Origin: Chara braunii
Taxonomy: Eukaryota > Plantae > Charophyceae
Length of the DNA stretch: 64,000 nt
Direction: 5' to 3'
Assembly (NCBI GenBank): GCA_003427395.1
Contig: BFEA01000013.1
Span: 2,043,106 to 2,107,105 of the forward strand
The position numbers and the translations under genes were made by a program. This document shows positions 12,714 through 43,199 of this stretch, in pieces. The notes beneath the pieces were generated by a model. The model saw only the letters and a list, made by a program, of their open reading frames with translations. It was not told the origin of the DNA and made no database searches. Each line of letters begins with the position of its first letter. Within the stretch, counting starts at the first letter, position 1.

Positions 12714-13172
12714 ATGGCCGCCAAGCAAGGTTCGAAAAGGTGCAGAGCGAATGAGATTGATGGCACTCTTGAAATGGGGAGAATCTTGGGGAGGGCATTC
12801 TCTGCAGTTCCCGCCATACATACTTTGTTGCCTCACGAACTTGCGACGATCACGAATGATCTCGCATCTGAGGCGGGCTGCTCACCCCGGATGGTTGTTG
12901 CACCCATCATGTCGATTGCAGGGTTGATGATGGGTTCTCGGGCGCACATTCTGATAGAGGATAATATGTGGGTTGAGAACCCAATATTCTAGTGCGTTAT
13001 CTTGGCCTTCAGCGGCACCAACAAGTCACGTGCCTTTGGCAAAATCTTGGGAGCGCTTCACAGAGTGGAGTCGGATATACAGGATCTTGTCGCCTAACAT
13101 TCCCCAATAGATGAGTTCGAGAACACCCAGGAGAAATAGGCGGCCAAGAAATTGCAGTTTCATCTCGCTGGA
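12714..13172 (+). pseudogene. DUF3987/YfjI-like ATPase, exon 1 (N-terminus and Walker A-like motif)
   Basis: LLPHELATITNDLASEAGCSPRMVVAPIMSIAGLMMG...WVENPIF*CVILAFSGTNKSRAF, with three in-frame stops. Ends at donor GGA|GTAAGG in phase 0, matching acceptor TTGCAG|AAG at 32455/4677. Confidence 0.72.
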
Positions 13173-13249
13173 GTAAGGTCGATTTTCAGACGTGTTATAA
13201 TTTTGTTATGTATTCTAATTTCCGATAACAATCTCAAAAAAAAAAAAAA

Positions 13250-13404
13250 NNNNNNNNNNNNNNNNNNNNNNNNNNNNNNNNNNNNNNNNNNNNNNNNNNN
13301 NNNNNNNNNNNNNNNNNNNNNNNNNNNNNNNNNNNNNNNNNNNNNNNNNNNNNNNNNNNNNNNNNNNNNNNNNNNNNNNNNNNNNNNNNNNNNNNNNNNN
13401 NNNN
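13250..13404. other. Assembly gap (N run)
   Basis: N bases. Confidence 1.
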
Positions 13405-13469
<65 letters not shown>

Positions 13470-13525
13470 TTCACCACCTAACGAATCGGAGCGACGCGGA
13501 GAAAATTACATGGCCACTGCGCAAG

Positions 13526-13564
<39 letters not shown>

Positions 13565-13565
13565 A
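13405..13565 (+). repeat. (GA)n-spaced ~61-bp repeat unit, same family as 35983-36423
   Basis: CGTTCACCACCTAACGAATCGGAGCGACGCGGAGAAAATTACATGGCCACTGCGCAAGGAT between GA runs. Confidence 0.9.
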
Positions 13566-16060
13566 CCAACCTTGGTGATGCTTGATGGCGACCACCCCTG
13601 CTCCCGCTGGCTGCTGCAACGAAGGATGGCCGCACTTCCCGTAGCGGACGATGGAGGGGGATTGATGTCTTCGATGACAACAGGCAAGGCGTTACGACTG
13701 CGGCGCGAGACACACTGGAGGACACCCGAATGGAATGTCTGGCGGCCTTGCGAGGAGGTTGGCTCACCCGGGTTCGAATTCGAACGTTGGGCGAAAATGT
13801 TCTTCCGGGCCTTGGCGCGGGCCGGGAAAAAATTTCGCCGGCCCGGTTGCAATTTTCCGAGAACCCCCCCTCGCACTTGCACCACGCCCCCCCAATTTTT
13901 TTTTTTTCCCCCTGGACCCTCGTTTTTGGCCATGCGGTGCACGCACTGCACTATGTGGCGCACGTGGGCAAGTGCCGCGCACGATATGCGCCGCAAGTGT
14001 GATCTGTCAAGAACAAGGTTGTGTTGTATAATAACGAGCACAAATGGTACTTCGAGATTTTTGAATTTTTCTTCATTTCTCTGATTAGATATAGAGTTAT
14101 TAGAATTTCAATTATGAGTCTAATTTTTCAGTGGATTGCTTTGCTTTGAAGATATGTATGTGACAAGTTTTTTTTTCTAATATTTTTCTATTCATTTAAA
14201 AAATATTTTGGAGGCCAGGAAATCCTCTTCAATTGCATCCAAAGGCCATCACCCAACTTTGGCTGGTTGGAAACTGAATCTAATATTCCATTCAATTGTT
14301 GTCACCTAAAGTGCGAATAGAAGTACACTCCTGTAAAAACCTTAAACCCTACTGAATTGAAAGCCCTAACAACCTTGTCTTGTTGAGACGATGCTGCACT
14401 CTGCCAGTCCCTTCTTGCTGGCCTTGGAGTCACTTAACTGTCCTCTCCCAATAGCGTTGGTTGAATGGTTGATAGGGGCCACCAGTGAAATCAGATCGTG
14501 CTTCTTGTTGATGGTTAGTAACTTGCCATGGACGAGGACTTGGATCTTGAACTGATTTTTTATCTCTTGGGTGTCCACTGCGTCCCTGTGCATAGTCTAT
14601 ACCTTGCCCTGCCCGACGACCTGGATGAGGCTAGATCTCTAACTGAGTTTTGATATCTTAGGCGTCCACTGGGCGTTGCGTTACCAGCAGCTCTGAAGAT
14701 CTATTTGCAGAAGGGTTTTATTTACGTGATTTTTTTTTTTTTGGGGGGGGGGGTCTTGCTTTTTCCTAGCCCGGGTCCGTGCGGAAAGCCTATTTGGATT
14801 TCTTTTTTTTTTTAATTAGAAAAGCATACGTGTTCCAATAACAGTTGTCGAAGAAGGCTCAACCAGCAACGTCACAAGGCAGCTACATCAGAAGCTCGAC
14901 GTGTTCTACCAGATGCAGCAGCAAACAAAATCTGCCCAAGGGAGAAGCTTAGCTGTTGCTGCAACAGCTTCATCAACAACATTAGGTAGAAGCGAGTGGA
15001 ATGAATGGCACGTCATATAGATCAACAAAATAAATCATATTTTTTTAAATTAAAAACCAGGTAGCAATGAGGCAGCTATCATTTGACACATAAACACACA
15101 CGACAGTTGTACACATTTGGATGAATGACAAGAGCTTCTGAATGTGTGACATTGTTTTCGGACTTGTAATTTTTTCTTTTCTGCTTGAATTACGTTGTTT
15201 TTTTTTTTTTGCGAAAATAGCCCTTGCGTAAGCCCTCTATCCTGGCGGTGGTAAGAGAACCGTAAGAATTGAGGGCTTATCTGTCGGGCTGCTCCATCTA
15301 TTGGTGGGGAGCGGCACCTGCTGGAAACCGGGTCCAATACATCTTTTAACACAGAGATTGTTGTTTCTTGTTTCTTGGGGCTGCGGCCATTTTTGTCTCA
15401 GTCTGGGGCTCCGTTATCCCATGGAGCCGCTAGTATCGCCCATCCCTTCTTGGGATCTGTCGCATCCTGAATGCGAGTTTGTGATGTTGCAAATAATTTA
15501 GTTCTGAAATATAACACTTATTGTTTTTAATAAATGTTTTTTTTTTTTTTTTATGTCTCTTGCAGTTATGGGCGGAAAAAGGTATACTGGGTATGAGATG
15601 AAGAGCAAATTTGGTCCTGTATTTGTCAAATATATCCCAATGGATCTGAACTATACCCAGTGTTGAACACCTTACATAAACACTTCAACTTGAGTTTGAG
15701 AGAGTGGGATGAAGCTTCTGCGGTGATAAAGTAAAGTGTTCGTCACATATTGTCCTTCTCATGTATTCTTAAGGGTGAAGGATATTTGCTGACACATGTT
15801 CGGAGTAGTGACGTAGAGAAAGACTGTGCGTGATCGTGAACATGTGAGTTTGTGATGTTGCTTATTTTATAAGCATATTTTTTAAACGGGGTGCTGAACC
15901 TGTCCTTGAAGGGAGTCCACCGCTTGAATTAAGTTTTTTTTTCTACGAACCCGCGTCTGTGTGGTGTTGTGTGTGGTGTGTTGTTGAGTTGGACACTACA
16001 GCCTTGCAAGGGTGGGGTGGATATCACGACCGGTATGGTTCCACTTTTGAACACCGTGTT

Positions 16061-16700
16061 CTAGCTGTAGTGGTTAAGATACTTGGCTCTGGAGGCCGAG
16101 GTAGCCGGTTTGAATTCCTGTTCGCACGGAGGAGGGCTTAGGCCTAGATGTGCGGATCCATGAACTGCGGTGGCTTATGCTGTCAGTACACATCCCCAGA
16201 CCCTGCTGCCACCTCGGCGCTGCTATCCAGCAGAGCCAGAATATCCCTCTGCCTGAGCTCTCACTTTTCTATATGGAAAGTGAGCTCTGCCTCCCTGCGC
16301 CCTGGGCCTGGCCGCCGTGTTTCCTGCAGCTTCTTGTCGGCCCCCAGTATCTGCGCTTAGGGCCATTGCAGACAGTGGCCTGGGCCCTCAGCAGTTAAGC
16401 AGCCTAACTACGCAACGTGGCCAGCATCGCACATAACGATTCTATAGGCCGAGAGGCACCTGGCCACGTCGTAGCCTGGATGAGCCCAAAGGTTCCACAT
16501 ATCGTGATCCCGCAGGGCGTGGGCCTTGTAACCAACTGGCGCGTGGCAACTGTCTGCTGCCTGAACCTTCAGAAATGACAAAATAGGCCTCATGTCGAAA
16601 TGCAGGGCCGCCTTCACTTAGGGCGGGCACGAGCCTTGCTGGGGGCCCTTTTGTCTGCCGGGTGTTGTGGCCTGAAAGACCCGGCGAGGGGCTCAATCCT
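16061..16700 (+). mobile_element. tRNA-like head followed by a dispersed repeat body (homologue at ~23670-24360)
   Basis: TAGCTGTAGTGGTTAA and GGTTTGAATTCC boxes. Shares CTCACTTT(T/C)CTATATGGAAAGTGAGCTCTGC and CCTTCACTTAGGGCGGGCAC with the 23.7-24.4 kb region. Confidence 0.5.
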
Positions 16701-18035
16701 CACACTGCCTCCTCCTTAGCTTACGAAGTCCGCTGAGGTGCTTTTACGCAGGTGCTTTCCCCTTCAACTTCCTTTCATAATCAGCAACGACGTGAGGTGC
16801 TGTCATAATCAACATTCATTTGGATTCGTGTGATGCCTGAATATGACCTTGTACTCTCTGGTAAGGTGGTCTTCCTCTGCCAACTGGCTTAGGAACGAGC
16901 AGATCTTTGGTGATCCATAATATCGTCAATGTCACGTGGACATTCATGGTTGGGGGCAGCATCTCCTCGATGAGCATCTATCAGTATCAGTGAAATGTGC
17001 AAGCTTGGAAGCATGGAAAACAGGGTAAGTACGCAGGTGACCATTAATTCTAATCACATAGGAGGGACCATCCGGATCACTACCCACGATATCCAAGACT
17101 TCCCAAGGACGAAGTACTGAGGCGTTAGCTTCTTAGAGATGCCGAATTCCTGTTTATTATTTTGCATAACAACGCTTTTTTTTTTTTTTTTTTGACCTTC
17201 TGGCACCCACGGTGGGCCTAGTCTGGTTGCTCGCCCAACCAACAAGTTTTTTTTTTTTTTTTTTTTTTAACCTGCAAGTTGTTGCGATTGGCTTGCAGCT
17301 TCATCTCCTGCAAGTTGTTCATACCTGGTCGAAACACAAGCAATTAATTAAAAGTTAATAATCTGCCGCGCGTTCAAGGATGACGCGCATTAATCAAGAA
17401 ACGGTCAAATTAAAAAAAAAAAAAAAAAAAACCTGCCTGCTGCCTGCTTACCTGACTGCTTGGTTGCCAGCTTGCCTGGTTGCCTGACTGACTGCCTGCT
17501 TGCCTACGTGCCTCGCTGTGTACCTGGTTGATGTGGTTGCCTGGTTGTCTCGCTTACTAGCTTGTTGGCTGCATGCGTGCCTAGGTGCCTGCCAGCCTGG
17601 GTTGTGTGACCCACTGGGGTATTTGTGTGCTGAGAACATCCTTTGACCAGGTGTAACCATGTTGTTTATGTCGGTTGCAGAACATAATTAGAGTTGGCTA
17701 GACCACATAGGTAGAAAAACAATCAGTAGCGGTACCACGTTTTCAGTCCATTAAAAAGTATATCATGAGTGTTTTCAAATGTTAGTAGAATCAAGACATA
17801 ACGAAATGTTTTTTTTTTTTTTTCATTGACAGTATTTTCCTACATTTGATGTGACACTTTGTGTATGATTAATAACCTTCTTGTGTATGTTCGGTTGCTG
17901 TGTTACTGTGTGTGTTTCGTGTTTTTTATTTATTTTTCTTTTATAAAAATTAACAGTTTACCAAGTCACTCAGCACCGGTATTTCGTCAGTACAGTCAAC
18001 AAATCGCAAAAGAGGACCCAGATATGCAGTGCGCC

Positions 18036-18310
18036 AATGATCCTGATGCAACATTGTCATCACCCTTCAAGACAGCGAAAGGAAAGGAAGCAACGCCTAC
18101 AGATGATAAATCATCATCAACACATCATCTTGAAGCAACATTGTCATCACCTTTCAAGACAGCCAAAGGAAAGTAAGGAGCAACTTCTGCTGATGATAAA
18201 TCATCACCAGTTGATGATCTTGAAGCAACATTGACATCACCATTGAAAACGGCCAAAGGAAACAAAGCAGCGACTTTTGCAAATGATAAATCATCACCTC
18301 TTGTTGATGA
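18036..18310 (+). repeat. Coding tandem repeat, 3 x ~87-90 bp (ATLSSPFKTAKGK...DDKSS)
   Basis: Visible in both DNA and translation. Confidence 0.85.
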
Positions 18311-19231
18311 CTCTCACAAAGTTCCATGTGCAAAATCTCCAACCAGAGCTTCTGAAAATGGGGGAGTTCAGCAACAGGATGCACAACCAAGGAGTATGTT
18401 AACCAATCCTGGAACATCTGCATCAAGAGCTTTGAAAATTTCTGCTCTCAATTCTGCAGCAGAAAATGGAGCAGACAATGGCGTTTTAGAAGGTTCACAG
18501 AAGCAAGAACCTTTGAAAAACGAATTTGAGTTCGAAGTCGCAGCTGCTGAGAATGGAGATCCAGTTGCAGTAAGGATAGTTACAACTCAGAACAACGATG
18601 GTATACATGACAAGAAAATTCAGGATGGAGCCATCAGTTTGGATAATAGTGATTCATCCGCAACTGCTTTATCTGGGAGTACTCGGGGGCCAAATTGCAG
18701 CGTAGGCGGAACAAGTGGCTCATTTCACAAACGTGATCGAAACGGTCATTCACAAAGGTCTAGAAAAGGACATAAGAAGAAGAAGACACCACAGTAGTTC
18801 CAGTATTAGTGGTTCAAAAACTATGAAGAACTTTTCTCATGTAACTTATGATTGATGTTTGTTTTTTCCATCTAGCTTTGATTTTTTCTCCATGGGTTTC
18901 AAGGGTTGTTGTGCACAATGATTATTTGAATTTCTTTGGAGAAAGAAGGGTCCAGTCTGGAATCTGACTACCAATCGTATTTGTAATTTTTTTGGCCTAG
19001 GAATTCAAAAGTGGTTAGGGACTGTATTTTGCATGGTACCATAGGCTAATGGTTGTCGTGTTAGTTATGCATTAGGTTAGTCGCAGTCTATAGTTCTCTC
19101 AGTCAGCAGACTTGCTTGGGCCAAAGGTTGAACAACGGGATGAGACGTACATGATGTTTCTATTTCCAATCTGACATCCCGCCCCGCATTGCGGGTCTTG
19201 GTGTTGTCACCTTATTTGGTTGTGTCAATAC

Positions 19232-19290
<59 letters not shown>

Positions 19291-19850
19291 GTCTCTATCT
19301 TTCTCACACACACACACACTCGCTTGCTTGATCTTTCTTTCTTGGTCACTTTGCTTGCTCTTTGTGTATGTGGGTGCCATAATTCAAAGCAAAACAACCA
19401 AGCAATCACCAGTCCTTAAAGATCATCATAAGACGATGCTGATTATTCTTTGGGGAGGCATGTGAAAGGTATGACGTATTTTGATCATCCTATCCTCATT
19501 AGACCCTGAAGCCCATGTCACAGATCTACTGTTTATACTTAGATTTTTTTATGTTTTTTTTTTTTTTTTTTTTTTTTAAGGTTATTGCCATATGTAATAT
19601 AGATACATATCTGTACATATATTTTTGAAGCAACAACTAGGCTACCAACCGGGCCACCCGGTCACCTTGTTTTCCATGGCAGCCTAGCTGTGCAAGGGCA
19701 AAGGAAGGTCCCAACAAACAAAACAAATTAAAAAAAAACAAAATATCCGAAAAAAAACTATGTAGTGCAAAAAAATAAACTAATCAACTTTTGCCTTAGG
19801 TTCTTATCAAAACTCTTTACTTAAGTTTTAAAATATTATATATATATCTA

Positions 19851-20118
19851 GGCTACCAGAGTGGCCCGGGGTCACTTGCCCGGCCGGGCCAAAATAATTA
19901 AAAAATAATAATTTTAAATTTTATTTTTTATTTTAAATTTGTTGAAGAATTTGGATGTGACCCTGAGGCAAAAGTTGTTCAGGTTGTTTTTCTGCATAAC
20001 ATAGTTTGTTTTCGAAAGTTTTAGATTTTTTTTTTTTTTTTTTTTTTTTTCTGCTGGGACCTTACCTGGTCCTTGCACGGGCTGGCCACCCGGGACCCGG
20101 GCGGCCCGTCTGGTAGCC
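19851..20118 (+). mobile_element. MITE with GGCTACCAG/CTGGTAGCC termini in TA context
   Basis: Terminal inverted repeat CTAGGCTACCAG...CTGGTAGCCTAG. An adjacent inverted partial copy lies at ~19640-19830. Confidence 0.75.
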
Positions 20119-22959
20119 TAGATATATATATATTATATCCTATATATATTTTTGTTTTTTTTTGAATTTGGTAGACTAGAGCAGCAGCTTAAAAATCCAA
20201 AAAGCTTCTCCCCCCCCCCCCCCCCCCCCTCTTCAATGTTCATGTTGGGGCAATGCACATTGGGGGGGGGGGGGAGGGGGGAGGGGGGAGGGGGTTGAGG
20301 ATATTTGGAGATCAGTGTCTTTGATATGACACAAAATTCAGGCATGTACTTTTCCAGCAGCTACCTTGTGGCTCTCACATTCACTAATATTCCAAACCTC
20401 AACCCCCTCTCTTGCTAGGAAAATCGTTTTTTTTTTTTTTTAATGAAAAGTGTAACAAAGCACTTTTGGTAATGATGTATAGCTTAAAACGACAGAGTGG
20501 TCACATCAAATATTGTTTATATCAGAAGCCCCCTATTGACAAGATAACATGATATGTCCTCATTCTTGTTGCTATATGATTGAAAGTTATTTCTTCATTC
20601 AAGTTCTCATGTTAATTTTAGAAATTTCTTACAAAAAAATAACACAGGTTTTCTGAACTTTCCAACTTGCTTGCTCGTATTGACGCGTGTATTGCTGGCT
20701 GTTGTTCTGTGTTGTCTCTTTTTTTTGTCTATTTGCATTGTCAAATGTCAATTCAGAATTAATTGCAATTGCGAGGCCAGAGGCCCTTCCCAGCCAGAGC
20801 GTGCATGGCCTAAGTAAAGGCGGGCCCCGAATTGTCATAAGGCCAATAATTTGTCAATTTTGCAAATCTTTGTCGGCGATAGACAGTTATGACGTGCCAG
20901 TTGGTTAAGACTTTTGAGCGTGTTCGCACAGGGTACCTCCCGGGCAGTTGGGCATACCTAACTAACCACGTCTGAATGCAGAATCAGGCCGCGACCGAAT
21001 TTTGAGGAAACCGGGACTCATGTGCAGCCGGGGAAGAACGCCCTTCGATATAGTAGCCGCGGGAGAGCAGGGAAGCATTCGGGCACTTGCTTGTGCGTGC
21101 GGCAGCGCTGCTGTGCTAAGTGTGTGCGTTAGTGCGTCGAGCTCTGCGGTAGAGCAGGGTAGCGCGAGCGGTCATAGCCAAGCTGCGAGCGCTGGCATCG
21201 GGGTGCAGCGCAGGGGGTTACAAGACTGATGAAAACTGGAAAGATGGACTCAATTGCTGATCTGATATATCCCATGACACTTGTCGATGCATTTCAAACT
21301 GTGCACATTTCTAATATGCTACCAGACGACATGCCAAATGTTTTTTCTCATGTAACAGAAGTGTTGAACAACAGAGCATCCGCTTGCCAGAAGAGTCACT
21401 GTACTGAGACAGATGTTTACACGGTTCGCACAAAACTTCGGTGGTATGACAAAACCCTTCTCGAGAATCCGGTAATGACAGCAGATCATGCCCTTCACAT
21501 GACGGAGACCGAATTCATCATCTTACCTGTAATTTCTCACTGGTCACAATGCAAGGAAGCACTTGTCTTCGAAGAATCTGCTCTCCAACCATTCTTCTAC
21601 CCCATGCAAGGAACTTCATCACTGGGTATTCTGTATAAAAAAAAGTGTCCTCATTGTCAAATACCGTTATCATACAGTTACTATACTACTGGAGTAAAGG
21701 AGCGCATGTTTAATGCAACAACAAGAGGTGATGAAGATTGGTTTGAACTCAATTTAGAGACAATCATCAGTGTGAGACTCCTGCGCGAGCACGATAAAAA
21801 ACTGTAAGTGATTTTGGGTGAGTGTTTTCCACGGTTTTCGGAGTGTCATGCAAGTTATGTACTAGTAACATATATGTTTTGTGTTGTTGCCTTGAGTCTT
21901 TGTTCCTTTGGTTGTACCAGGCTTAATTTTTTGTCTTTTGCGCCTGTCCGCTGCAAGTGCGAGGATGATGGACTAGATGCTGTGATCCACTGAATTGATA
22001 AACTTTATGGATGACATCCTATAAATAGTGAACTTCATTTCTACTGGTTCGGAATGTACAGTCTTCGACGAAGTACGACCATAAAATTGGCAAATAGGAA
22101 AGGATATGACAATACTTCTACGTACATTTCGCATATTTACATCTCAACTTTTAACGACTTTGTTTTGTGCTACTCATTTTTCTGTTCTAAATTGTGTACA
22201 GGTATGAATTGAACAGTGGCTTCGCAACAACTGCGACAGTGCACGATGATAGAAAGGGGTTGACAAGATTCCTCACGATTGAGGATCAAACGAAAGAGAC
22301 GACAAGACATAGGCACACAAATCGGTATATCCTAAATAGGCAAAGACTTGAGGATGCCTACTTTCGTTGGAGAGTGTCTTTGTTTCTTCAAAGGCATGAA
22401 GAACATTTAATTGCACATGTGAACCTTCCAATGCCATTGAATGAAATTTTGCTTCAGGTAATAACTTCTTACACTTGATTGATCCTACTTCTCACAATTT
22501 TTATTATAAATTGACTGAAATTACGTGTGTCATATAAGGATCCATCCAATCGGTAACAAACATGTATGTCATGTGGTTCCCTGCATGAAACTCTGCTAAG
22601 ACTAGTGTTTGTTTTTGTATCAACGAGCCTTCAAAAAGAAAAAGTACTTGTACAATGACTTGCATAATATAGTTTGGGACAATGCTGTTCAATTGCAACT
22701 CTGAAATGGAAGAGATTGGGAAGATAAATGGACAAAGCAAGAAGAAGAATTTAGAGTGAAAGAAGGAGATGAAGTCTATGAATGAATATCAGTCCCCCCT
22801 CAACTCATCGATTATATCTGTAAGGAAGTTAATTGCCCATTGCTTTGTTTCTCATTCTTGTTTTTATTATAATTATCATGAATTATATATAATCTAATAA
22901 ATAATTAAAGGATGTGGTGAGAGGAGGAGGTGGACGAGGAAAAGAAGGGCTTGTACTTG

Positions 22960-24430
22960 TGTGTGAGAAGGGTATGCAAGCCATTAGTTTTGCCTTAACG
23001 TCTGTGGACCCCACTCAACTAACTGGAATGGTTTTATCTCTAACCCTTTGCCTTCTGTCCTCTGCGTCACTGACCTCGGCTTCTAGCTGGACCGGAATGT
23101 CTACTGCCTCCTGAATGTCCAGGTCGGCCAACGTGAGCTGGAGTGGTTTGCTGAACTGCGAGCTCACCATTTGACTTGAGACTGCTGTCTGACTAACCCG
23201 TACCTGAGCAATTAGCGCATCAGCCTTCATGGCTTGTCTGCTGCATCCTTATGCCTCTGCTGCTGCGGCAGCGTGTCCTAACACTTGCTCCACTGCTGCA
23301 ACTGCCCTTCGGACCCAGCACTACACATTGCTTTTAGAATGGCGTCAGGCGCCCCAACCTACTCTACTCCCTACAGCTACGACATCTGCAGATGGCGACC
23401 AGGACCCCTTCCTCTTAAAGACCAGTGTGCATGATGTCAACCCCAATCTCGACCTTCTCTTACACATCAGGTATGTATTGACTCGCTCATCACTCTCCCT
23501 TAACTCCCCACAGTGTGCAATCCCTACACCCAACGACCACCATCACCCTCCTAGCTCTGCACCCAGCAGCCTGGCCATGGTCGCTGTGTGCCCACTGCCC
23601 TGCAGTGCACCTCACACCTCCAGCGCCCGTGTGCGCGATCCCGCCAGTGCCTTCGTCTCAATCACGAAGGAGCAAGCCAGCAGCGTGGCCGCATTGCCTA
23701 CCAAGGCCAGAATGACCCTGGCTGCCTTGCTCACTTTCCTATATGGAAAGTGAGCTCTGCTTGCCGAGCTCAGCGCCTGGCTGGACGAGTTTCCAGTAGC
23801 TTCCAGTTGGGCCTCATTGCCTGCACCCAGGCCCACATTCAGTTAAGGGCCTGGGCCTCGTACAGTTAGGCTCATTCAGGCCGACGTCTAGGCTCAAGTG
23901 TCCGTCGTATTCTCATTGGCTGGTTGGGCCTCAGTGTCGACAATGCTGCTTTCCGATTCGCCCGCAACGGCTTCGTGATGTGTCGGCCTCACGCTGACTG
24001 TGGCCATGGTTCAACCACCGGGCCCCTGTGCTCAACTGCTTGGCACATATACTGTTGCTGCGTAGAGCCCAAGGAGAGGCTCACGTTGCACTTTAACCAA
24101 CTGACACCTGATACCCATATTGGAAATGCTGAGATAAAGGGCCTTTCGTGGATATTCAGGCCTGCCTTCATTTAGGTCGGGCACAGGCTTGCTGAGGGCC
24201 ACAACCCAGATTATGTATGAGCCCTATAAGGGCTAGGCCATATAGAAGCTAGAGGCCCACATATGGGTTCCAACAACCACTTAGCATAATCCCACTGGCC
24301 GGAACTTTGGCCTTGCCACAGATATGCAGACCCACCTTCACTTAGGGCGGGCACAACCTTTACCAGCACATGCGAAGGGTCAAATCCTTGCAGAGTCGTT
24401 AGTGTTTCCAAAAACCCTATGGCTTGCAAC
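22960..24430 (-). mobile_element. Degenerate retroelement-like insertion in KDZ intron 2
   Basis: GC-richer block with short coding-like minus-strand ORFs and homology to 16200-16650. Family not identified. Confidence 0.35.
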
Positions 24431-24627: not shown

Positions 24628-24696
<69 letters not shown>

Positions 24697-25828: not shown

Positions 25829-25889
<61 letters not shown>

Positions 25890-30800: not shown

Positions 30801-32108
30801 GGTGTGACTGCAGCCAGATGTGCTGAACCTCAACTCACTTACGTGGTTATTAGGGAGATTAACTACGGTTTGTCATTACAATTTAATCATATTGTTTCAG
30901 CGTCGAGGTTTTTTTTTATTTTTATTTTATTTGTGTTTTATATTATTTACTATATAATTAATGGTTGTTTTATCTTCTTGCTAATCTTCACGTAAGGTAC
31001 CCTCACCTTGCCATTTTGTCTGCACATGGTGATTTTGCTCGTCAATCTTAGAATTTGTTATGCCAAGCACATTTGAGAGCCACATAGCCTAGGGCTAAGT
31101 ACTCTCATGATTACTGTATCGAAAAAGCAAAATAATAGAAAGTAACGGTACTAAATACTTTTGCAGTGTGGGTGCACTACGCTTATTCTCAACAGGCCTA
31201 CTACATTTCAATCTTCAACCCCATGATACTGGTGTGTGTGACGAAGATTCATGTGCATTTGGCTTACTCTGGATGTTGTTGTCGTATGATCCTAGCCGCC
31301 TTCCTTGGCAGGTGCAAGCGGCTAGCTGTCTCCTGTGGCAGGTGATGTTGGATTATGTCAGTCGCTTCTTGTAGCATCTGCTGTTGGATGATGTCAGCTA
31401 CCTCCTGTAGCAGGGTGTTGTTGTATGCTAGCCACCTTCTGTTGTACTGTGTTAGCCATTGTTGTTGTATGACGCTAGCTGCCTCCTTGGCACTGGTCTC
31501 TGCATTTCAAACTGTTGTTGCACTGTAATGACCTGTTGCAGGCTGTCCTGGGTAATCTACGAGGCACTACAGTTCGAATATCTATCAGGGCCTTGTACAT
31601 AATTATTTTTACTTTCAGTGATTTAGGGTTTTTATCGTACGTGTGTTGTCATATTCGCTACACGCTAAAAAAAAGCATGACCGTGTCAGACTGTTTCGTC
31701 ACACTTTCACCAACTCATCAGGAGGTTGAACCCCGATACTCTGCCCAGGATTCATTTGACTGATGGATCGCCCAGAGTTAGCGACACCCCTGAGAAAACT
31801 GATCGAGTTTACTCACCCCAACCTTGCAATCCAAGCAGACTTCCGGTCCAAACCCTTGATAAGAACGGTAGTAAGTCTGAAAAGAGAGAGAGAGAGGGAT
31901 CAATAATGCACATGGGTCCTGCTTTGTATGTTTGCAAATTTTTCAATGGTTGAGATGTCCCGTAATATGACAAGCTAGCATAAAATATTTCTCATCCATC
32001 AGTCTCTTACTTTCTTTTTGTTTTATTGTGTCAAATTCTGTTGTTAACACAAACAAAGGTTTTTGTTATATGTCGTGTTTTTTGCCCCTTGTCTAACATG
32101 TTTCTTGA

Positions 32109-32184
<76 letters not shown>

Positions 32185-34688
32185 GTAATTTGCACAGGGG
32201 TCATGCTAACTGGATCTGCTCTGTATGTTTGCAAAAAAAAGTGTCTACGGTGTCCGGTAGAATGACAAACATAATGTTTGCATCCATCAGTGCCTGTTCC
32301 TTTTTTTTCTTTTTTTTTCGGTGCCATTTTGTTATTAGCACAAACATAGTCTTTCGTTATATATCGCGTTTTTTGCACTGTTGTTCTGGTAAATACCAAA
32401 TTTTAGAAATTGTTGGGGTTTAACAACGATCTTGTTTTTTTTATAATTTTGCAGAAGACATTTGAAAAGATGTTTGAATCTCTTCTATCAAACGTCAACC
32501 CGGAGTCAATTGCATTCGAAGATGAGTTGGGGACAGTTTTTGACAAGATGGATCTTTGTCATAAACCTGTACAAGGTGGTGGTGGGTTGGACCGAACTAG
32601 TCTGCTCAGTCTCAAGCAAGGAGGAAAGTGGGAAATGGCAACATTGACACATCCCCATCGGCACCTCCGAGTGACTCATGTTATCTTTGCGGGATACACC
32701 CAGCCAGAGCGATTTCTTGCACTGTATGCAAATAACGCCGATGGCTTGATGAATAGATTCAATGTCTTTATTTCATCAGTTGAGCTGGCGAAGTATCAAA
32801 AGAAAAAAAAAATGGCCTCAAAATGTCAAAAGGCATCACAAAGTCCAACCAACTTGCTCCTGAAGTGATCGATATTGATCAGCATCGTTCTGTCGGCAGC
32901 AAAGCAGTGCTCACTTTGGCAGAGGTATGGTGTTTTCTGTTTTGTAATAAACTTTTTTCCTCCTTCTTTTGCAATCTTTCAACTTATTTTTTTTTTCTTT
33001 TCTTGAAATCAGTTGAATGATTAGTGTAAATCAATTCTTTTTTACTATGCTGACTGTCATGCCAGCCTGATGTTCATTATGTCTTTCTCTTATTAAAGAA
33101 TAGAAAGGTTAAGTGAACTTTATTTTGATGACGAAAATGCAAGTTTTTTGGTTGTTGTACTTTATCTTTGCTTGTGGGAGTAATTTTTCCCTATAATGAT
33201 GCGTTTTTCATGATCTGTGCAATGGACAGATATGACTCTTGTTTGTGCCCCTCAAGATATCAATACATCTTCATTTGAATATTTTCAATCATTTTTAGTT
33301 TGTTATATTGAGATACCACTCGGGCCCCCTCTGGTCACCTTGTTTTCCAGGGCGGCCCGACAGTGTAAGGGTAAGGAAAGTACCTCTGCAAAAAAAAAAA
33401 AAAAACCCTGAAAAAAACTATGTTGTGCGGAAAAATAAACCGAACAACTTTTCCCTCAAAGTCGTACTAAAATTTTTTACCAAATTTAAAATAAAATCTT
33501 AAATTAAATAATATATATATCATCCTGTGATGAAACGCAGAGAGCAGAGTCTCGTGGCATAGACAATGTACATATGTCTAATTAAAAAAAAAATAATGGT
33601 TCTCGTTACATTTCCTGTTGCAGCTATTCAAGAGAATATGGTTGATGCATCATGATGTGGAGAATTTTGGCGCAACAACGTTGCATAACTATTGGATTGG
33701 CGACAAAGCATTGGAGTCTTTCATAGAGGAATACGACGAAATCCAAGGGGTTCTCTCTGCATTGCATAAAGCATTTCTACTTGGGAAAGGAAGTATGTAA
33801 AAAAATAAAAATTATTGGAGGTCTGATACATTTTGCAATGTTTTTGCAGGTTTTTATGCAAAGATGAAAGGAGAGGTGATCATTGTATCAACAATCCTCC
33901 ATGTGATCTCTTACGCATTATCCTCCATTGAGGACAATCTCGATGAATCGGAGGATTTTGCTGATTGTCGGATATCACAGTCCAGTGTTGATTATGCTCG
34001 AAAATTTCTTCGTGTATCTTGCGATCAACGACGGACTCTGATTAATGATGGACAATTGGTGTCAGTTATCAAGATCGCCCGTGCAGGAAAGAATGTCAAT
34101 GAGTCCCCCGAGACTCTGGAAGACGAACAGTTAAACAATTCTCAGTCCTTCCTTATGCGATTTGTAAGTACCGAATTCCTTATTTTTGTCACCTAAACTT
34201 GTATTGACGAGCTGTTAGAATCATAACGGGCAGGTGAACAATATCATTGCATACATGTTTCTTTCTTTTACCGAAGTTTACCTCTTTCGCCCCAACTATC
34301 CGAATTGACCTGGTCGAAACATGCATGGTAGGATCTTCAATTGCAGGGTGACTTCGACCATCTGTGTGCATGTTTCCGTTCCTACCATTACGAAGAACAA
34401 CAATGACAATTGTCTGTCTTGGGTCAAGGTCTAGGATCTGGGAATTGAGTAATGAGTCAGTATGTTTCTTGAATGAGTTATTGGATGCAATCTCTAGTTG
34501 AATTCTTGCTTTTTATCTATGCTACTAAAGTGGTCCGGGGCAAATTGCATGCCCAAGCCGAAAAAAAAGAAAAAAAAAATATTAATCCTAGTTTACCAGT
34601 CAGGCCGCCCGGGTCACCTTGTTTTCCAGTGTGGCTTGGCCGTGCAAAGGCCAAGGAAGATCCAATCAAAAAAAAAAAAAAAAAAAAA
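27845..34688 (+). repeat. Copy 2 of the 6.8-kb duplication
   Basis: Begins immediately after the adapter and matches 67-6910. Confidence 0.95.
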
Positions 34689-35601
34689 TCCAAAAAATCA
34701 AAAAAAAAAAACATGTTATGCGCGAAAATCAACAGACTAACTTTTGTCTCAGGGTCATATTATTATTTTTAATTAAATTGATAATAAAATTAAAATTTAA
34801 AAATATATTTTTACCTATTTTTATTTTTTATTTTTGCACACCCGGGCAAGTAGTCCCGAATCACTCTGGTAGCCTAGTGTTAATTTTAATTTTATTATAA
34901 ATTCGGTAAAGAAGTTTGATGTCTCCTTGGGATAAACGTTGTTCGGTTTACTTTCCTGCATAACGTTTTTTTTTTTGGAATTAAAAAAAAAAAAGGTGGG
35001 CCCTTCCCTTATCTTGCACGACCAGGCTGCCTGGTCAAACATGGTGACCTGGGCGGTTCAGCTGGTCGCCCAGTTATATTAAAAAAATCCTAAATTTTTT
35101 TTAATATTAATTTAATCACAACCACAAACACCTTGGAGGACTTTTTTTTATATGGTTATTTCAATCGGGCTGACTTTTGTTTTTTCCAAAAATTGTTTCC
35201 TTTGGTTAACAGTTAGACTGTGATGCATTTTATCTCCAAAGTCAGTATTAGGCCCTCATATGTCTAGCTCGCAGTTGCCCAACGGCCTGTTTGTACATTT
35301 ACTGATTGTTTTCTTCCTGGCTTTCAAAAACTTTCTCGTATGATTTTGTGTGCGAGTGTGTATGTTATCATGACATATCACCATTTTTCTGGTTCTTTTT
35401 TTTATTCTGTTGCAGGACTCTTTCCGGAAGAGTTGTGCAAAAATGATACGAGAAAACACGGAACATCGGAAACTTGCAAGAACAACTCTTGCGAACGTGA
35501 AGTCATATGAAAAATCTAAAGAAATTGATGAGATGTTCCGATACATGGAAGAGATCGAACTGGGAAAATATGTTCTCCATCATCCAAAGATTGGTAAATG
35601 A
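32455..35601 (+). pseudogene. DUF3987/YfjI-like ATPase, exons 2-5 (32455-32924, 33624-33792, 33850-34163, 35416-35601)
   Basis: Same as 4677-6385, plus a phase-0 terminal exon DSFRKSCAKMIRE...EIDEMFRYMEEIELGKY (possible winged-helix tail). Confidence 0.78.
34588..34877 (-). mobile_element. MITE copy in reverse orientation within DUF3987 intron 4 (further partial copies ~33310-33500, ~34900-35072)
   Basis: CTAGTTTACCAG...CACTCTGGTAGCCTAG. Reverse-complement similarity to 19851-20118. Confidence 0.7.
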
Positions 35602-35884
35602 ATCGATTATGCCGTCATGCCCTTTTTATTTTGTAAGGAAAACCTCTGTTTCGAACTGATTGCAAGAATTTTCCTGATTGTAAGAGGGTGTATGTCTGTT
35701 ATGTCCCTTTTTTTTCCTTCTAAAAATGCAATTGATATGTCTCATACTTGCGGCACACAGCAGCGGTGCGCGCTGCACTGCCCCCTAGGCCCAGTGCATG
35801 TGCGCGTGCGTGCGCAGGCATGCGCAGTGCACATGCGGGTCGGGCTGGACCAGGTGTGCAAGATGCGCGTTTTTTTTTTGTTTT

Positions 35885-35916
<32 letters not shown>

Positions 35917-35979
35917 GGGACGGGGCGTTGTGCTTCCACTAGGGTTTGGGAGGTGCCTTCACCACTGAACAAAGTAGGG

Positions 35980-35982
<3 letters not shown>

Positions 35983-36032
<50 letters not shown>

Positions 36033-36089
36033 TTAACCACCTAACAGATCGGAACGATGTGGAGAAGATTACATGGCCGCTGGGCAAGG

Positions 36090-36166
<77 letters not shown>

Positions 36167-36239
36167 TTAACCACCTAACGGATCAGAACGATGTGGAGAA
36201 GATTACATGACCGCTGGGCAAGGATGAGAGAGAGAGAGA

Positions 36240-36280
<41 letters not shown>

Positions 36281-36336
36281 TTAACCACCTTACGAATCGG
36301 AACGACGTGGAGAAGATTACATGGCTGCTGGGCAAG

Positions 36337-36382
<46 letters not shown>

Positions 36383-36423
36383 CCTTAACCACCTAACGAA
36401 TCGGAACGACGCGGAGAAGATTG
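35983..36423 (+). repeat. Tandem ~61-bp unit separated by variable (GA)n, four copies, running into an N gap
   Basis: CCTTAACCACCTAACGAATCGGAACGACGTGGAGAAGATTACATGG-like units at ~36031, 36165, 36279 and 36383. Confidence 0.92.
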
Positions 36424-36505
36424 NNNNNNNNNNNNNNNNNNNNNNNNNNNNNNNNNNNNNNNNNNNNNNNNNNNNNNNNNNNNNNNNNNNNNNNNNAAGT
36501 GGTTG

Positions 36506-36530
36506 CTGTCTCTTATACACATCTAGATGT
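36506..36530. other. Partial Nextera junction adapter just after the N gap (36424-36496)
   Basis: CTGTCTCTTATACACATCTAGATGT. Confidence 0.97.
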
Positions 36531-39030
36531 ATATATATATATATATATATATATAGCCCCTCGTTTGTTGTCCTCTTCTCCTGCTTTACCTGAGAATTAC
36601 CGCGCAACTCTATTTGGCTTCGTTTGTGGTCTTCCCCTCCTTGCTATCTTACCTCTTCCTCACTCGCAACAATCTTTCACACTATGCCATTCATTCTCAC
36701 ATACCCGACTTTGTCTCCTCGTTTCCATCCTAGCGGTGACATAGTGACCTTCCTTGCCCTCTTTGACCTTCTGTCTCGCGATAGTCTTTCCTTTCCTGAC
36801 CTCCTCTTCTTTTCCCACGTAGATGTGCCCTCTCACGTTCTCTTGCCTTCTCTTCCACAACCAGCCTACGTCTCTCTCTCTCTCTCATTGTTGATTTATT
36901 TTAAAGAAACTGTGGAATGTCTTTTTTTATCCCATATTTTAATTGTCTACACGAACAAAGGAAGTTTTTACGATCTCATCAAAGACACGTCTGCTCATTT
37001 CCTCATCTTTCTGTGCCCCCCCCCCCCTCTGAAACACCTTGTATCTTGCTTATCCTAGAACCCAGCTTGAGGGTTGATGTCCAGGCAACCACCGTCGTGT
37101 CTGGACCAACAACAAAAAGGAAAAGAAATGGAAGGGTTGTGATTTAAGCTACAAAAAAATGAGACATTGTAGAATTAGAACTTCATAAAAGAGCAAACAA
37201 ATTATAACCCATTATTTAAGGGATATATTTGTTTGAATTACTTCCTGTTATTCTTTTATAGGCAGCTTTATTTAAGGGAGATATTTGACACGGCCACCTT
37301 TTCGCGACAGTTGCAGCACCAAGGGTTTGATTCTTGGACCTCTCTATACCCTGCGTACAGTATCCCGTGTCTGTGTATGTTTGAACACGTGACCTGTCGC
37401 CCGAAAGTTGTCTGTTTGGGACTGTTGTACATATGTGGGTTGCATGGGTTCGATCCATAGATCTGTAGCGTAGGGGTCGTAGCTTGATTGAGTCGTAACT
37501 GCTACAGAGCCGAAGGGTTACTCACGTAGGTTGTAGATCTATCTAGAACTATCCTAGGTGGCACTTTGTAGGTCCTAGGTCTCAGTCCTACGTAGAAGTG
37601 TCTAGAGGAAAGTCCTACCTAGCAGATCTTACCAGTCCAGTTAGCACCATCTGGAAACATCCAGTCAGCAAGTACCAATGGGACTGTTCACACCCTGGGC
37701 CAAGGTCCGATAGGGTCGGCCAACCAATCTACGAAGTATAAACCAAGAGGCAGCGTCGAGTCATTCATTCATTCCGCCTATGAGCCTTGCGGAAGCGCTG
37801 CCAAAGTAGTCGCTTGTGTACGATGGTCTGCAGGTGCCCGGAGAGGAAGAGGGCTAGGAGAGGGAATCACCATAGCTGTTAGTAGGAGGAGGAAGACGAC
37901 GGCCATAGCCGCCATGTCAGTGTGTTAATAGATGATAGTGAGTCAGTGTGAGTTTGTGTATGAGTGAGACATCCAGGGTAGATCCAGATAGCGAGTGAGT
38001 GTGTGTAGTGTGTGTGTAAACAAGTTGTCGGGATACAGCGATCGGGAGGAGAAACTTTGTCGAGCCATTTCTGAATAAAGTTGGATCCGACTGTATTCCT
38101 GGCCAAATTCAAATCTCCCAGTTTTCAGTGTGGGCGCGGTTGCGCCGGCCATATCTGTATTTGGTTGCATGCATGTCGAGTCGGAGAAAGGAGGTCTGAT
38201 TGCATATTTCTTCGAACTGCTTTCTGGTATTCCCTTTTTATGATGAATATCATGTACTCACTCTTATATTTTCTGTGTTGTCTGCTTTTGCTCTTCCTTT
38301 GTAATTTTTCCGCAGGTATATCATTACTTGCTTACATTGTTTGCAAATCATTCGTTTCCTGAATACATGGGTTATGATGATATGTGTCATCTTTTGCGCT
38401 TTGCACTCAATGCGAAAAGGAAAAATGCAACAACAAAAATCAAGGAATTCACAGACACTGAGAGGATCCATCATGTCGGTAAGTTTTTGTAAATAATCTT
38501 TATAATTTTTCTGCCACGTGCATACTATTTTTCAGTTATGTCTTATATCACTATGTTGTATGGAGTTGTTGTGACACTGTACCACAATGAGATCATGAGA
38601 CTTGTGGGTCCGAAGCTGAATTTTAAAGTTATATGTGGATTATCGCTCAGTGTCTCTCGTAACTCCATCCGAGGTACTTGTGGTATTCATGGAATACTGT
38701 GCTTGATCATGGCGATATTATATGTGTTATTGAGTATAATGGCCACAACATCTCATCCAATTTCTGACAAGGGTTGGTTTTTTCTACGTTGTCTTTGAAG
38801 TTGATTTCTTCCACTTCAAAAATCATGTTGGGCATTGGTGTAACAGCAATGTTAATCCAAGAAAATATGACGAGCTGAAAAAAGCAAACATGTCAATCTG
38901 CGAACAACGTTTCAAATGGTTTGCGCAATAGAAAGGAACAATGAGGTAAGTTGTTTTTATCTTTTTTTTTAATAACAATTTTCTTGTTCTAGTAATTTTT
39001 TAATTCTCCTTGTTATTAAAAGTCTTATTA

Positions 39031-39420
39031 TTGGTTAAGCACACAAGTGGCATTCAGGATGTGGGTTCGAGCCCCATCATCTCCTGCAATGCACTATGTG
39101 GCAAGCGAGTGTGATAGTCCACCTGATACATCAGATCAGTATTGGTAGGGTCTATGACCAACACATGTGCAAGTGTGAGCGTGAGTGGATTCTGTGTGAT
39201 AGGTGGGAGAGCGTTGGCCATAGCCATTACTGCTACTTGATGGGGGATGGGGGATTCCGAAGTAGATGGGAGGCACAACTACTGGCAAAATGCTCGGTCT
39301 TTGCGTTAGCCGGCCCCCCCACCGACAACCACCCCCTACTCTCTGAGCACCGCCGATCAGGGCGCGGGGCAATGTGCATCCGCTTAATTGTGAGAGGTAG
39401 CTATGCTTGTAGGGGTCACT
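39031..39420 (+). mobile_element. tRNA-derived SINE copy in KDZ intron 6
   Basis: TTGGTTAAGCACACAAGTGGCATTCAGGATGTGGGTTCGAGCCCC head. Colinear with the reverse complement of 11250-11640. Confidence 0.72.
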
Positions 39421-39920
39421 GACTCTGCCACTATCTGTCTGTTATGTGGTTAGTCTGCCTGTTTGTCTGTTAGCCTCTGACTCTGTCAATGTCTGTCTGT
39501 TGTGTGTCTGCCTCTCTCTCTCTCTATTTGTCACACTGTCTGTCTGTGACTCGCTTTCTATCCCATGCAAGAAAAGTTGCACTGGTTGCCTGTGGATATG
39601 CCTGGCCGGCCTTCCTGGTTGCCTGACTCCCGGCTTGGCGCAGGGAGGCTGTGTGGCTGCCTGGCTGCCTGGTCGCCTGGCTTCCAATCCTCCTGCCTGC
39701 TTGCCTACCTGGTCACCTGGCTTGGCTGCCTGATTGGCTGTCTGCCAGGCAACGAGACTGCCTGACCGTCTCTCTATCTGCCTGCCAGGCAACGAGACTT
39801 CCAGAGCAGCAGGCTCAGAGCGTGGGGGAGATAGGATGGGATGGGATATGGGGGGATGAGGCCCTGGTTGACTTCAGGATGGAAGACAACCACTACCGGT
39901 CTCTCAGAAATATACACCAA

Positions 39921-42011
39921 GCTGATAAATATACACAACAAACTTTTTGAAGTTTTTTTCCCTTGTTTCATGTGCCCCCACTCTCGAGATCTGTTTTGAC
40001 TTTTGTTCTTGCTTTATCAATTACCTGACATTTTGTTTGGAACTCTTTTGTTATGTTTGTTGATTGTAGAGGTGGGGAAAGTGCGTAGGCTTGACTTTTT
40101 CACCACTTATTATATTTGATTTGACAAATTGACATGCTCCCATTCTTATTTTGCGACATCCTTCTTCACTGGCGGTGTGATATCAGTTTATTTAATTATT
40201 TATGTATTGTAGTTTTATGGAACTATTTATGTAAGTGGTGAAAGATCGGAGGTCGTGTTACCATGATCTGGCCTAGGTGGTAGTGGTTGTCAATGACAAG
40301 CAGTGTTGGCACCCGCATTCACAAAGACCGCAACACCCCAGACCTTGTGTTCTGAGGGGCTGCAGCTAGTAGTCCGAAGAGTCATGCAGACCCCTCCACG
40401 TCTCACGCCATAATGCAAAGTCTGATAATTTTGACAATGTGCACCTCTTCATCATGGCAAGTAGCCCTTCACAAAACTCCATTATCGGTTCTCTATCATG
40501 GGACTGATTTTCGCTCCTAGGTGCAGAGTTTGCACCACCACATCTCACACCATACTCTGCAGCGAGGAGCGAAAACCGGACCCATGATTTTCGCTCCTAG
40601 GTGCATAGTTTGGGCCCCCACATCTCACACCATACTCTGCACCGAGGAGGGGAAACTGGACCCATGATTTTCGCTGCTAGGTGCAGAGTTTGCACCTCCA
40701 CATCTCACACCGTACTCCGCTCCGAGGAGAGAAAACCGGACCATGATTTTCACTCTTAGGTGCAGAGTTTACACCTCCGCATCTTATACCATACTTTGCA
40801 TCGAGGAGCGAAAACTGCACCCACGATAGAGAACCAGTAATGGAGTCTTGTGTAGGGCTACTTGCCATGGTGAAGAGGTGCACGTTATCAGAATTATCAT
40901 ACTTTGTGTTATGGCGTGGGATGAGGGGGTGTCTGCATGACTCTGGACTGCTAGCTTGAACGAGATGCAGCCCCTCAGAAGACAAGCTGTTGCGGTCCTT
41001 GGGAATGCGGGTGCCGTTGGTGTATGTTGAATGTGCAATCAGTAATTTACCTGACAAAAATCACCAGCACGCAGCGAGCTCTCCGGGGTGCAAATTGGAG
41101 TCCTGGGCTAGTTTCCTTTTTTTTTTTTTCCACCCCCAAACCGAGTCTCTGGTTAGGCTTGACCCCATAATGGCCCCCCAATAATAGTTCAGACAGCGAG
41201 CATCCAGAAAGCTCTATCTTTCTGTCCGATTCTCTATGCTCTTCTCTGTCAAACTTTTGCATGCCCGTGACGAGCAGCCAGATTGGTGCCCCCCAGAATA
41301 CATGGGGCATGTGTGCTGTGTGTGGACAAAAACAAAAAGAGTACAGATTTTGAAAAAGAGAGTTAGCCTCAGGCAATCTGACAGTTTAAACTCTATGTGG
41401 ACTTCCCTAAGAGCTCCTCTATGTGAACCGCATTACCTATTAGGACTACCCCCGCAAACAAAAGCAGAGAGCATGAAGGGTGTAGTGGGCTGGTGGCAGC
41501 TCGATAGCAGCTGACCCATGTCATATTTATCTAGTGCATCTTTTTTTGGTCAGCAAAACTTTTCATTGGTGCATAAGGTTTTTTTTTTTGGAATGCCATG
41601 AGGGTGGCGGGGGAGAGCGGGGAAGAAAGGGGGGGGGGGGTGTTGTCTTCTGCCACCATTTTTTTTCTCTTTATGGGTTTAGGACCCAAATGTTCTTGTG
41701 TGAGGTGAGGCTGCTGACAGATACTGCTTGAGCGATCAGATGACCTTGAATTTTACTTTGAAAACAGAATGACGGCTTTGAGTAAAGAAACAAGGTAAAA
41801 GGATGATTACAAGCCTCCCTTACTTCAGCAGGGGCAAGCAGTGTGGCCAATAAATACTGAGGACTGGTTAATCGGAAGCTGATACATATACAAAGCGAAC
41901 TTTTTGAAGTTTTTTTCCCTCATTTCATTTGCCCCCGCTCTCGAGATCTGCTTTGGATTTGGTTCTTGCTTGATCAATTGCCTGACATTTTGTTTGGAAC
42001 TCTTTTGTTAT
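39921..42011 (+). repeat. ~115-135 bp direct repeat pair (39921-40033 and 41878-42011)
   Basis: Shared GCTGAT...AACTTTTTGAAGTTTTTT...CTCTCGAGATCTG...CCTGACATTTTGTTTGGAACTCTTTTGTTAT. Confidence 0.75.
40308..41015. mobile_element. Non-autonomous foldback element: ~195-bp TIRs around four 79-80 bp hairpin repeats
   Basis: GGCACCCGCATTC...GAATGCGGGTGCC termini with GTT on both flanks. Internal units start at 40506, 40586, 40666 and 40745. Confidence 0.82.
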
Positions 42012-42522
42012 CCAAACTTCAGGTGATTTTTTCACCAATTACAAAATTTGTCTGCCTTGCCTTTCTGCCTGCCTCCCTTCGTGCTTGCCTCCCTACTTGG
42101 CTAACTCCCTATTAGTCTGTCTTTTTTTTTTTCGTGATTGGTGCAAAAAGAAAAAAAATATTTCGTAACTTTCAGAGGTTGTCTAACTGGCTCGTTGTCT
42201 GCCTGTCTGGATGTTTGGGTGTTTCTCTCTCTATCTGGCTCTGTGAGTTTGCCCTATATGGCTGTCTAGTTCGCTGTCTGGTTGCTTGTCTATTTTTCTC
42301 GCTGGCTGCCTGACTGTCTGCCTTGCCTGCCTGCATCCTCCCTGTCAGTCTGTATCTCTCTGTCTGTCTGTCAGTCTGTCTGTTTGTCTGTCCGGTTGTC
42401 TGTCCGACTGTCTGTCTGTCTCTATCTGTGTGTGGATTACTCTCTTTGTCTGTAATACACTTTTTATCATATGTGGGTGAAACCGCGTTGGTCCTTCTTA
42501 TTGTTAAAGCAAAAAGTATGGA

Positions 42523-42591
<69 letters not shown>

Positions 42592-42592
42592 N

Positions 42593-42678
<86 letters not shown>

Positions 42679-43199
42679 ATATGTATTTGTTTCCACATTT
42701 GATCAAAACTTCAAAAGGTTACTTGTTCCCAAATGAACGTTGTTCTGGGTCATCAACTCACACTTTTTTTTTCGGTCCTGAATGCCGGTGTGATTTTGAC
42801 TCCATTGCAGGTACATGAACAAGGTTAGATTCAACTTTCTTCTTTTGATCATATGCCAGATCGACCACGAAAAGAAATCGATGACAGAAATCGAGAGAAT
42901 CAACCAGCGCACAGAGAGGTTAAAGAGGAGAAGACTTATTTGTTAACAAGTGGAGAGCAACAATTTCGGGCCCTTGATCAGACCAGGACAAGTGGCAGAA
43001 TCAACTTGCGGACAACATTGGCCATAGTGCCTCGCTCATCCCAAACCGTTTATTCACAGAGAGAGATGAACGGTGTTTGACATTAAATATTTGGAATCAC
43101 TGCAGTTACTTTTTGGGACCACTGCAATTATTATTTCTTTGCTTTGCTATACTTGGTCATACGCATAGCCATAGTGCCTCAGTTATCCCAGCGAATGCA

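Follow-up and report, generated by a model that had tools for sequence, protein, structure and literature searches.

The window analyzed here, a stretch of 64,000 nucleotides from the charophyte alga Chara braunii (assembly GCA_003427395.1, contig BFEA01000013.1, positions 2,043,106 to 2,107,105), holds the remains of a DUF3987 helicase gene and of a gene for a KDZ transposase with a chromodomain. Both genes had been assigned to one mobile element in an original prediction made from the sequence, and this is supported by Klebsormidium nitens, whose orthologues of the two lie in a single insertion with an 8-bp target-site duplication (TSD) and inverted ends. The Chara genes very probably form one element of the K. 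nitens-type family. The core gene set of this family likely comprises the chromodomain-KDZ transposase and a DUF3987 helicase of the SF6/MCM-like kind, plus an AEP PrimPol in the complete K. nitens member. The window itself is best read, with reasonable confidence and with the replisome mechanism proposed below included, as a decayed and mis-assembled copy of an old streptophyte-algal KDZ family carrying a helicase. The Chara copy can no longer encode intact proteins.

On K. nitens scaffold DF237628.1, the DUF3987 gene (P0003) is flanked by a UL52-type zinc-finger gene placed head-to-head and by the chromodomain gene placed tail-to-tail, the DUF3987 and chromo-KDZ orthologues being 253 bp apart. 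The zinc-finger gene has visible AEP motifs and one exon matching human PrimPol 5L2X (E=0.008), and is assigned on these sequence features as a PrimPol. The three genes are contained in L001:5259-19214 (24276-38231 of the record), a block of 13,956 bp, 711 bp of which are a gap, together with a GC-rich called gene of 282 aa that has no family match. The 8-bp repeat CAATCGTC stands on both sides of the block and does not recur on that strand within the 22-kb locus. The block ends are imperfect inverted repeats of ~205 bp (133/184 identical), with an inverted-end score of 64 against -33 +/- 12 for shuffles (maximum 4), and both carry arrays of the CATTCAGGATTCA motif in opposite orientation. Removal of the block and one repeat yields a stop-free primase-D5 helicase open reading frame (ORF) of 982 aa with contiguous PHROG positions. 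The block is a complete transposon insertion, and since it is a single one with a TSD, inverted ends and a restored target ORF, the helicase, the PrimPol and the KDZ transposase moved as one element. Alternative junctions at 6-7-bp repeats around ATTAAT were rejected, since on inspection the target gene would then retain a stop or a frameshift.

The PrimPol is also found head-to-head with DUF3987 (L002) in two overlapping Logan contigs, which stop short of any KDZ region; a second, degenerate DUF3987-like gene lies between the PrimPol and the main DUF3987 gene at L002 3029-3938. The K. nitens target region (L001 1-3719, 4422-5258 and 19215-22296; L006 1-989) encodes a Prim-Pol/D5 primase-helicase and a UL9-like helicase, as well as a second, unrelated KDZ-like gene and a possible tyrosine-recombinase-like ORF, as in a virus-like or composite element. 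The public K. nitens model P0008 (KFL_006790040) skips open CxC5 and CxC6 exons and looks wrong.

The Chara DUF3987 gene, whose presence in the window was confirmed, consists of five exons on the plus strand; homology searches of the window genes were run exon by exon. Exon 1 (12714-13172) has a Walker A-like SGTNKS and three stops (12990, 13095 and 13137), and shows 43% identity to the Chara paralog P0001 and 26% to P0003. Exon 2 (32455-32924), with the Walker B motif FEDE, a DGLMNRF motif and a frameshift near an A-run at ~32800-32812, has its best relative in the C. braunii paralog GBG75866.1, at 72% identity. Exons 3 (33624-33792) and 4 (33850-34163) are followed by exon 5 (35416-35601), which holds the stop and has no family match, its position fitting a C-terminal domain. 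The exons are tied to family PF13148 via homology to P0001 (E=6e-5 to the family profile) and P0003 (72.3 bits with a cut-off of 27; E=5e-20), and a helicase-family test gave a PHROG DNA helicase match (E=6e-8); no PDB match was obtained for P0003. In the Walker motifs, the Lys-Ser/Thr and the acidic pair are retained and the glycine pattern is deviant. Paralogous pieces in Chara are few, at 87-95% DNA identity, and word-index searches, which cover a length band only, returned neither a further full-length DUF3987 gene nor any Chara KDZ paralog. The P0001 gene model includes a fused piece of ribosomal L22 and looks wrong. A decayed minus-strand ORF (12288-12689) lies head-to-head with the DUF3987 gene, in the slot of the PrimPol in K. 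nitens; its reading as an RPA-like protein, from a Cys pattern reminiscent of RPA70-C, found no support in Pfam, PDB or the Atlas.

The KDZ gene has seven exons, also on the plus strand, which encode a CxC5-like cluster, a CxC6-like cluster, a chromodomain and the KDZ core. The CxC5-like cysteine cluster is in exon 1 (21229-21803; E=1e-13 to the K. nitens exon); exon 2 (22202-22457) is followed by exon 3 (24932-25336), with the CxC6-like cluster, an HVDG motif and the start of the chromodomain, and by exon 4 (26545-26879), with the chromodomain body, the start of the KDZ core and a 1-bp frameshift near 26845. Exon 5 (38316-38478) carries the GYDDMCH motif, exon 6 (38801-38945) the VDxFH and CEQ motifs and a stop at 38929, and exon 7 (42811-42946) the stop. 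Taken in order, all exons have a match in the K. nitens chromodomain gene (E=7e-4 to 2e-17), and Chromo is the sole Pfam match of single window exons (E=6e-4, exon 4), which together uphold the predicted KDZ-type gene with a chromodomain. The conserved acidic/His motifs of the core, DG, YDDxCH (YDDMCH in Chara), DxFH and CEQ, which we take to be catalytic, are intact in Chara and present in both species. The Atlas structure neighbors are KDZ, CxC5 and CxC6 clusters, the CxC6 assignment coming from these neighbors only; the Atlas model reaches a TM of 0.72 to a KDZ cluster, according to its row, and our own fold model has a pLDDT of 38. Metagenome KDZ matches are 1.3-kb contigs without DUF3987. 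Introns common to Chara and K. nitens in both position and phase number five in the KDZ gene and at least three, probably four, in the DUF3987 gene. Within KDZ intron 6 lies a palindromic 700-bp element (40308-41015) with internal 80-bp tandem repeats, bracketed by a 90% duplicate (39919-40054 and 41876-42011).

The assembly interleaves the genes, in the order DUF3987 exon 1, a gene of unknown function, KDZ exons 1-4, DUF3987 exons 2-5 and KDZ exons 5-7. This is because contig C, an adapter-bounded piece of 8,579 bp (27845-36423), sits in the wrong place. A complete Nextera mate-pair junction adapter (27807-27844) marks an artificial join of contig B to contig C, a partial one (36506-36530) lies just past the second N gap, and neither N gap of the window represents simple continuity. 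The most likely home of contig C, on sequence grounds, is the gap at 13250-13404: the splice from the end of DUF3987 exon 1 at 13172 to 32455 is in phase and is the same as in the Chara paralog P0001, and the (GA)n and 61-bp satellite closing contig C (35983-36423) continues at the start of contig B (13405-13563), the last unit of contig C being the one that most resembles the contig B unit. The KDZ gene leaves contig B at the end of exon 4 (26879) and resumes at 38316, tying contig B to contig D. The order A-C-B-D untangles both genes over 29,939 bp plus gap contents, and would also fit the mate-pair geometry, with a junction from where B ends to where C begins, ~23 kb upstream. Of the original picture of three intron-containing genes in series on one strand over ~30 kb, the shared strand and the introns stand as they were, while the serial order and the extent hold after this reordering and not as assembled.

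Positions 67-6910 repeat 27845-34688 without a mismatch, include DUF3987 exons 2-4 and end in a 47-A run. The sequencing runs in which this DNA occurs all stem from one organism. Unitig depth over the duplicated sequence in the source sample, which is depth and not copy number, is 6.9-8.5 versus 5.7-9.4 for other single-place contigs; being near the single-place level, it suggests that one sequence was probably assembled twice. The 47-A run (6890-6936), which halves a miniature inverted-repeat transposable element (MITE), and a 49-A run (11836-11884) flank a 4.9-kb block upstream of DUF3987 exon 1, and both may be assembly misjoins. A third Nextera adapter (63264-63301, within 63113-63449) has the same 151-bp stretch on either side, a small duplication created by the adapter.

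Several observations weigh against a single element with these functions. The DUF3987-KDZ linkage in Chara rests on a contig reordering derived from sequence, and the window yielded no PrimPol-like sequence. The predicted shared ends and TSD exist in K. nitens; none were found in the window, where a search for terminal inverted repeats (TIRs) gave low-complexity matches only. The pair recurs inside the 13,956-bp K. nitens insertion, but the two genes are co-oriented in Chara and tail-to-tail in K. nitens, and the family has therefore rearranged. A complete element was seen only once, the Walker A motif deviates in both species, and the transposase profiles fall short: the K. nitens protein reaches E=0.017 with the KDZ core profile PF18758, below the cut-off (a related piece, L004, has 26.5 bits versus a cut-off of 26.6, and the window exons alone have no match), and the K. 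nitens CxC5 exon, at E=0.011, is also below the Pfam cut-off. Both AlphaFold models are of low confidence and the fold search was uninformative.

In the mechanism proposed for the family, the KDZ transposase would bind the repeated subterminal motifs via its zinc clusters, cut both ends and integrate the element at an 8-bp staggered cut. The chromodomain would bias insertion toward methylated-histone, repeat-rich chromatin, with which the position of the K. nitens copy inside another element's gene is consistent. Helicase and PrimPol would work together as a small replisome, either copying the element after excision or resynthesizing it at the donor site, leading to copy gain, which is the least secure of these steps. 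The Chara copy would have reached ~30 kb by expansion of its introns and by nested insertions. Helicases of the DUF3987 type belong to the MCM-related SF6 class and are found together with AEP primases (PMC4889955), and one bacterial DUF3987 protein acts as a 5'-3' helicase, binds its partner PrimPol and promotes strand-displacement synthesis (PMC11724360), oligomeric 5'-3' unwinding being known for a bacterial member only. By analogy, this biochemistry suggests self-replication of the algal elements. Among the roles first envisaged for the helicase, the PrimPol as third core gene of the K. nitens relative points to element replication and away from strand transfer or target selection. It is tentatively proposed, at somewhat below even chances, that these elements represent a new eukaryotic self-synthesizing class, integrated by KDZ and copied by their own PrimPol and MCM-like SF6 helicase without a family B DNA polymerase (PolB) or capsid, that has been maintained in streptophyte algae since before the split of Klebsormidium and Chara.

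The strongest competing explanation, which has a substantial though minority share of the probability, accepts the same element but has it move by ordinary cut-and-paste, the helicase and PrimPol being accessory factors for gap filling, donor repair or the restart of host forks stalled on the element. A TSD and inverted ends are the normal signature of cut-and-paste, Chara copies at >=85% identity are few, and neither a single-stranded DNA-binding protein nor a processive polymerase was demonstrated in Pfam, PDB or Atlas searches. PrimPols are, moreover, low-processivity repriming and repair enzymes. Repair roles for PrimPol have been described (PMC11724360). Against this stand the fact that DUF3987-AEP pairs are typically the replication modules of elements, and the head-to-head arrangement of PrimPol and DUF3987 kept in two sources (K. 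nitens and the Logan contig L002). Between true self-replication and such an accessory repair role the balance is about even.

It is unlikely that the Chara DUF3987 and KDZ genes, whether from different copies or from unrelated elements, became adjacent by chance or misassembly in repeat-rich DNA. The three adapter insertions, two gaps and perfect duplicate of the scaffold speak for it, as do the orientation unlike that of K. nitens, the unrelated gene in between and the lack of located ends; however, both genes are low-copy and their closest relatives adjoin in one K. nitens element, and the satellite ties contig C to B as the KDZ exons tie B to D. Slightly less probable still is that the transposon acquired PrimPol and DUF3987 in a single event from a virus-like element and keeps them as passive cargo that it does not use. 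Such a capture would suit the virus-like replication genes around the K. nitens element and the second, degenerate DUF3987-like copy on L002/L003, but the genes have many introns whose positions are conserved between lineages, and the DUF3987 gene of K. nitens has kept an intact ORF at an identity to Chara of only 25-40%, which implies long purifying selection. Animals have a domesticated KDZ gene in HMGXB3, and a domesticated host gene cluster kept by synteny might explain intron positions conserved across a deep split and a top Atlas feature match to the HMG domain-containing protein 3 cluster (at a score of only 0.82), but it is very improbable here, being largely refuted by the K. nitens block as a discrete insertion with a TSD in another gene and opposed by the stops, frameshifts, paralogs and absence of observed spliced RNA of the Chara genes.

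Among described KDZ elements, Kyakuja, including the fungal TET/JBP carriers, resembles the algal family in the putative CxC5/CxC6-type clusters before the KDZ core, in being multigene and in one CA end. It differs in its companions, which here are a helicase and a PrimPol and not TET/JBP, and in that the chromodomain here lies within the transposase. Described Kyakuja have a 7-bp TSD, CA..TG ends and no TIRs, while Zisupton and Dileera have an 8-bp TSD, in Zisupton with TIRs (PMC12730594). The K. nitens relative, with an 8-bp TSD, CA..TC ends and imperfect TIRs, departs from the Kyakuja end definition, although, as only one insertion was seen, its repeat might be a 7-bp TSD extended by a single chance base. 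With Zisupton and Dileera it shares the 8-bp TSD; its cysteine clusters score as CxC5/CxC6 type, and no helicase or primase is described for those families in the papers found. SWIM, SAP and other CxC types are typical of Zisupton and Dileera, and Pfam scans returned no SWIM, SAP or Ulp1 domain and none of those other CxC types. The transposase appears to work as a KDZ enzyme does and looks most Kyakuja-like by its cysteine clusters, yet it is filed within the KDZ group and not as Kyakuja.

The prokaryotic PrimPol and DUF3987 modules (AgaPP/AgaPH elements, SF6 phage helicases and PICMI satellites) also place AEP and DUF3987 genes side by side on an element that integrates (PMC11724360, PMC4889955). 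The algal element differs from them in being eukaryotic and spliced, in using a DDE-type KDZ transposase and not a tyrosine integrase, and in having an AEP similar to eukaryotic PrimPol, with a zinc finger of the UL52 type. Polintons/Mavericks, casposons, pipolins and Teratorn likewise combine an integrase or transposase with their own DNA synthesis genes, but depend on PolB or on an entire viral genome, and no PolB or capsid was found among the genes called in the 14-kb K. nitens element. Helitrons and Academ are also eukaryotic DNA transposons with a helicase, which is PIF1 (SF1) or RecQ (SF2) there versus the DUF3987 SF6/MCM-like type here, Helitrons furthermore using an HUH nuclease.

No paper was found that pairs KDZ or Zisupton with a primase or PrimPol, or Klebsormidium with Kyakuja, in a search that covered few subscription papers and no Repbase entries; the KDZ-DUF3987 pairing, already presumed undescribed in streptophyte algae, is thus provisionally new. 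In the literature searched, DUF3987 occurs in prokaryotic contexts only, and viral-contig scans gave no matches. A spliced DUF3987 gene on a eukaryotic transposon is unexpected because a survey of double-stranded DNA virus replication lists DUF3987 SF6 helicases in phages and no SF6 in eukaryotic viruses (PMC4889955). To our knowledge, the eukaryotic DDE transposons that synthesize their own DNA rely on PolB enzymes or on a complete virus genome. If the proposal is true, a 14-kb element that makes do with a transposase, a PrimPol and an MCM-like helicase would offer another solution in minimal and testable form. Since the ends of the K. nitens copy are defined, its helicase gene is intact and the alga can be cultured, transposition and replication are directly assayable, and the copy also supplies termini and a TSD for a poorly characterized KDZ lineage outside fungi and animals.

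The gene of unknown function between the DUF3987 and KDZ genes (14845-18797, plus strand) has a soft three-exon model (~14845-14985, 15566-15730 and 17957-18797) whose start was not located. It has 90-bp internal repeats, a stop at 18174 and a break in the middle exon, and no homologue was found in Pfam exon scans or the other searches made; it is at most a candidate member of the element. In one of its introns, 36 bp (16807-16842) match the subterminal motif of K. nitens at E=0.01, probably by chance. All three genes are on the plus strand and lightly decayed by stops and frameshifts, as originally noted. Intact spliced copies did not emerge from RNA-seq: poly-A reads from 6% of one run showed no splice joints, with 1-2x unspliced coverage of KDZ exon 4 and intron 4.

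A very-high-copy MITE lies in KDZ intron 4 (27421-27715), and its family recurs at 19637-20121, 33314-33516 and 34588-35070. Its presence in introns of both the DUF3987 and KDZ genes is as originally stated, but it is uninformative on their linkage because its read depth (~13,000-19,000, versus ~8 for unique DNA) is more than 1,000 times that of unique DNA. Starting 1.7 kb past the KDZ stop, 44598-46400 holds an array of ~13 units of 97 bp, with partial copies in inverted orientation after it, a foldback element or perhaps the right subterminal array of the KDZ element. Farther on, a decayed Ty3/Gypsy-type retroelement on the minus strand (47864-53949) retains gag-like, reverse transcriptase and RNase H pieces between inverted, 75% similar flanks (47864-48075 and 53737-53949), and short inverted repeats cluster at 54651-56955, with a 180-bp palindrome at 56702-56882. 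An inverted pair at 11283-11637 and 39031-39388, 74% similar and with a tRNA-like end, is probably a family of short interspersed nuclear elements, and a short cox1-like peptide at 7620-7720, judged by eye, is a probable mitochondrial insertion.

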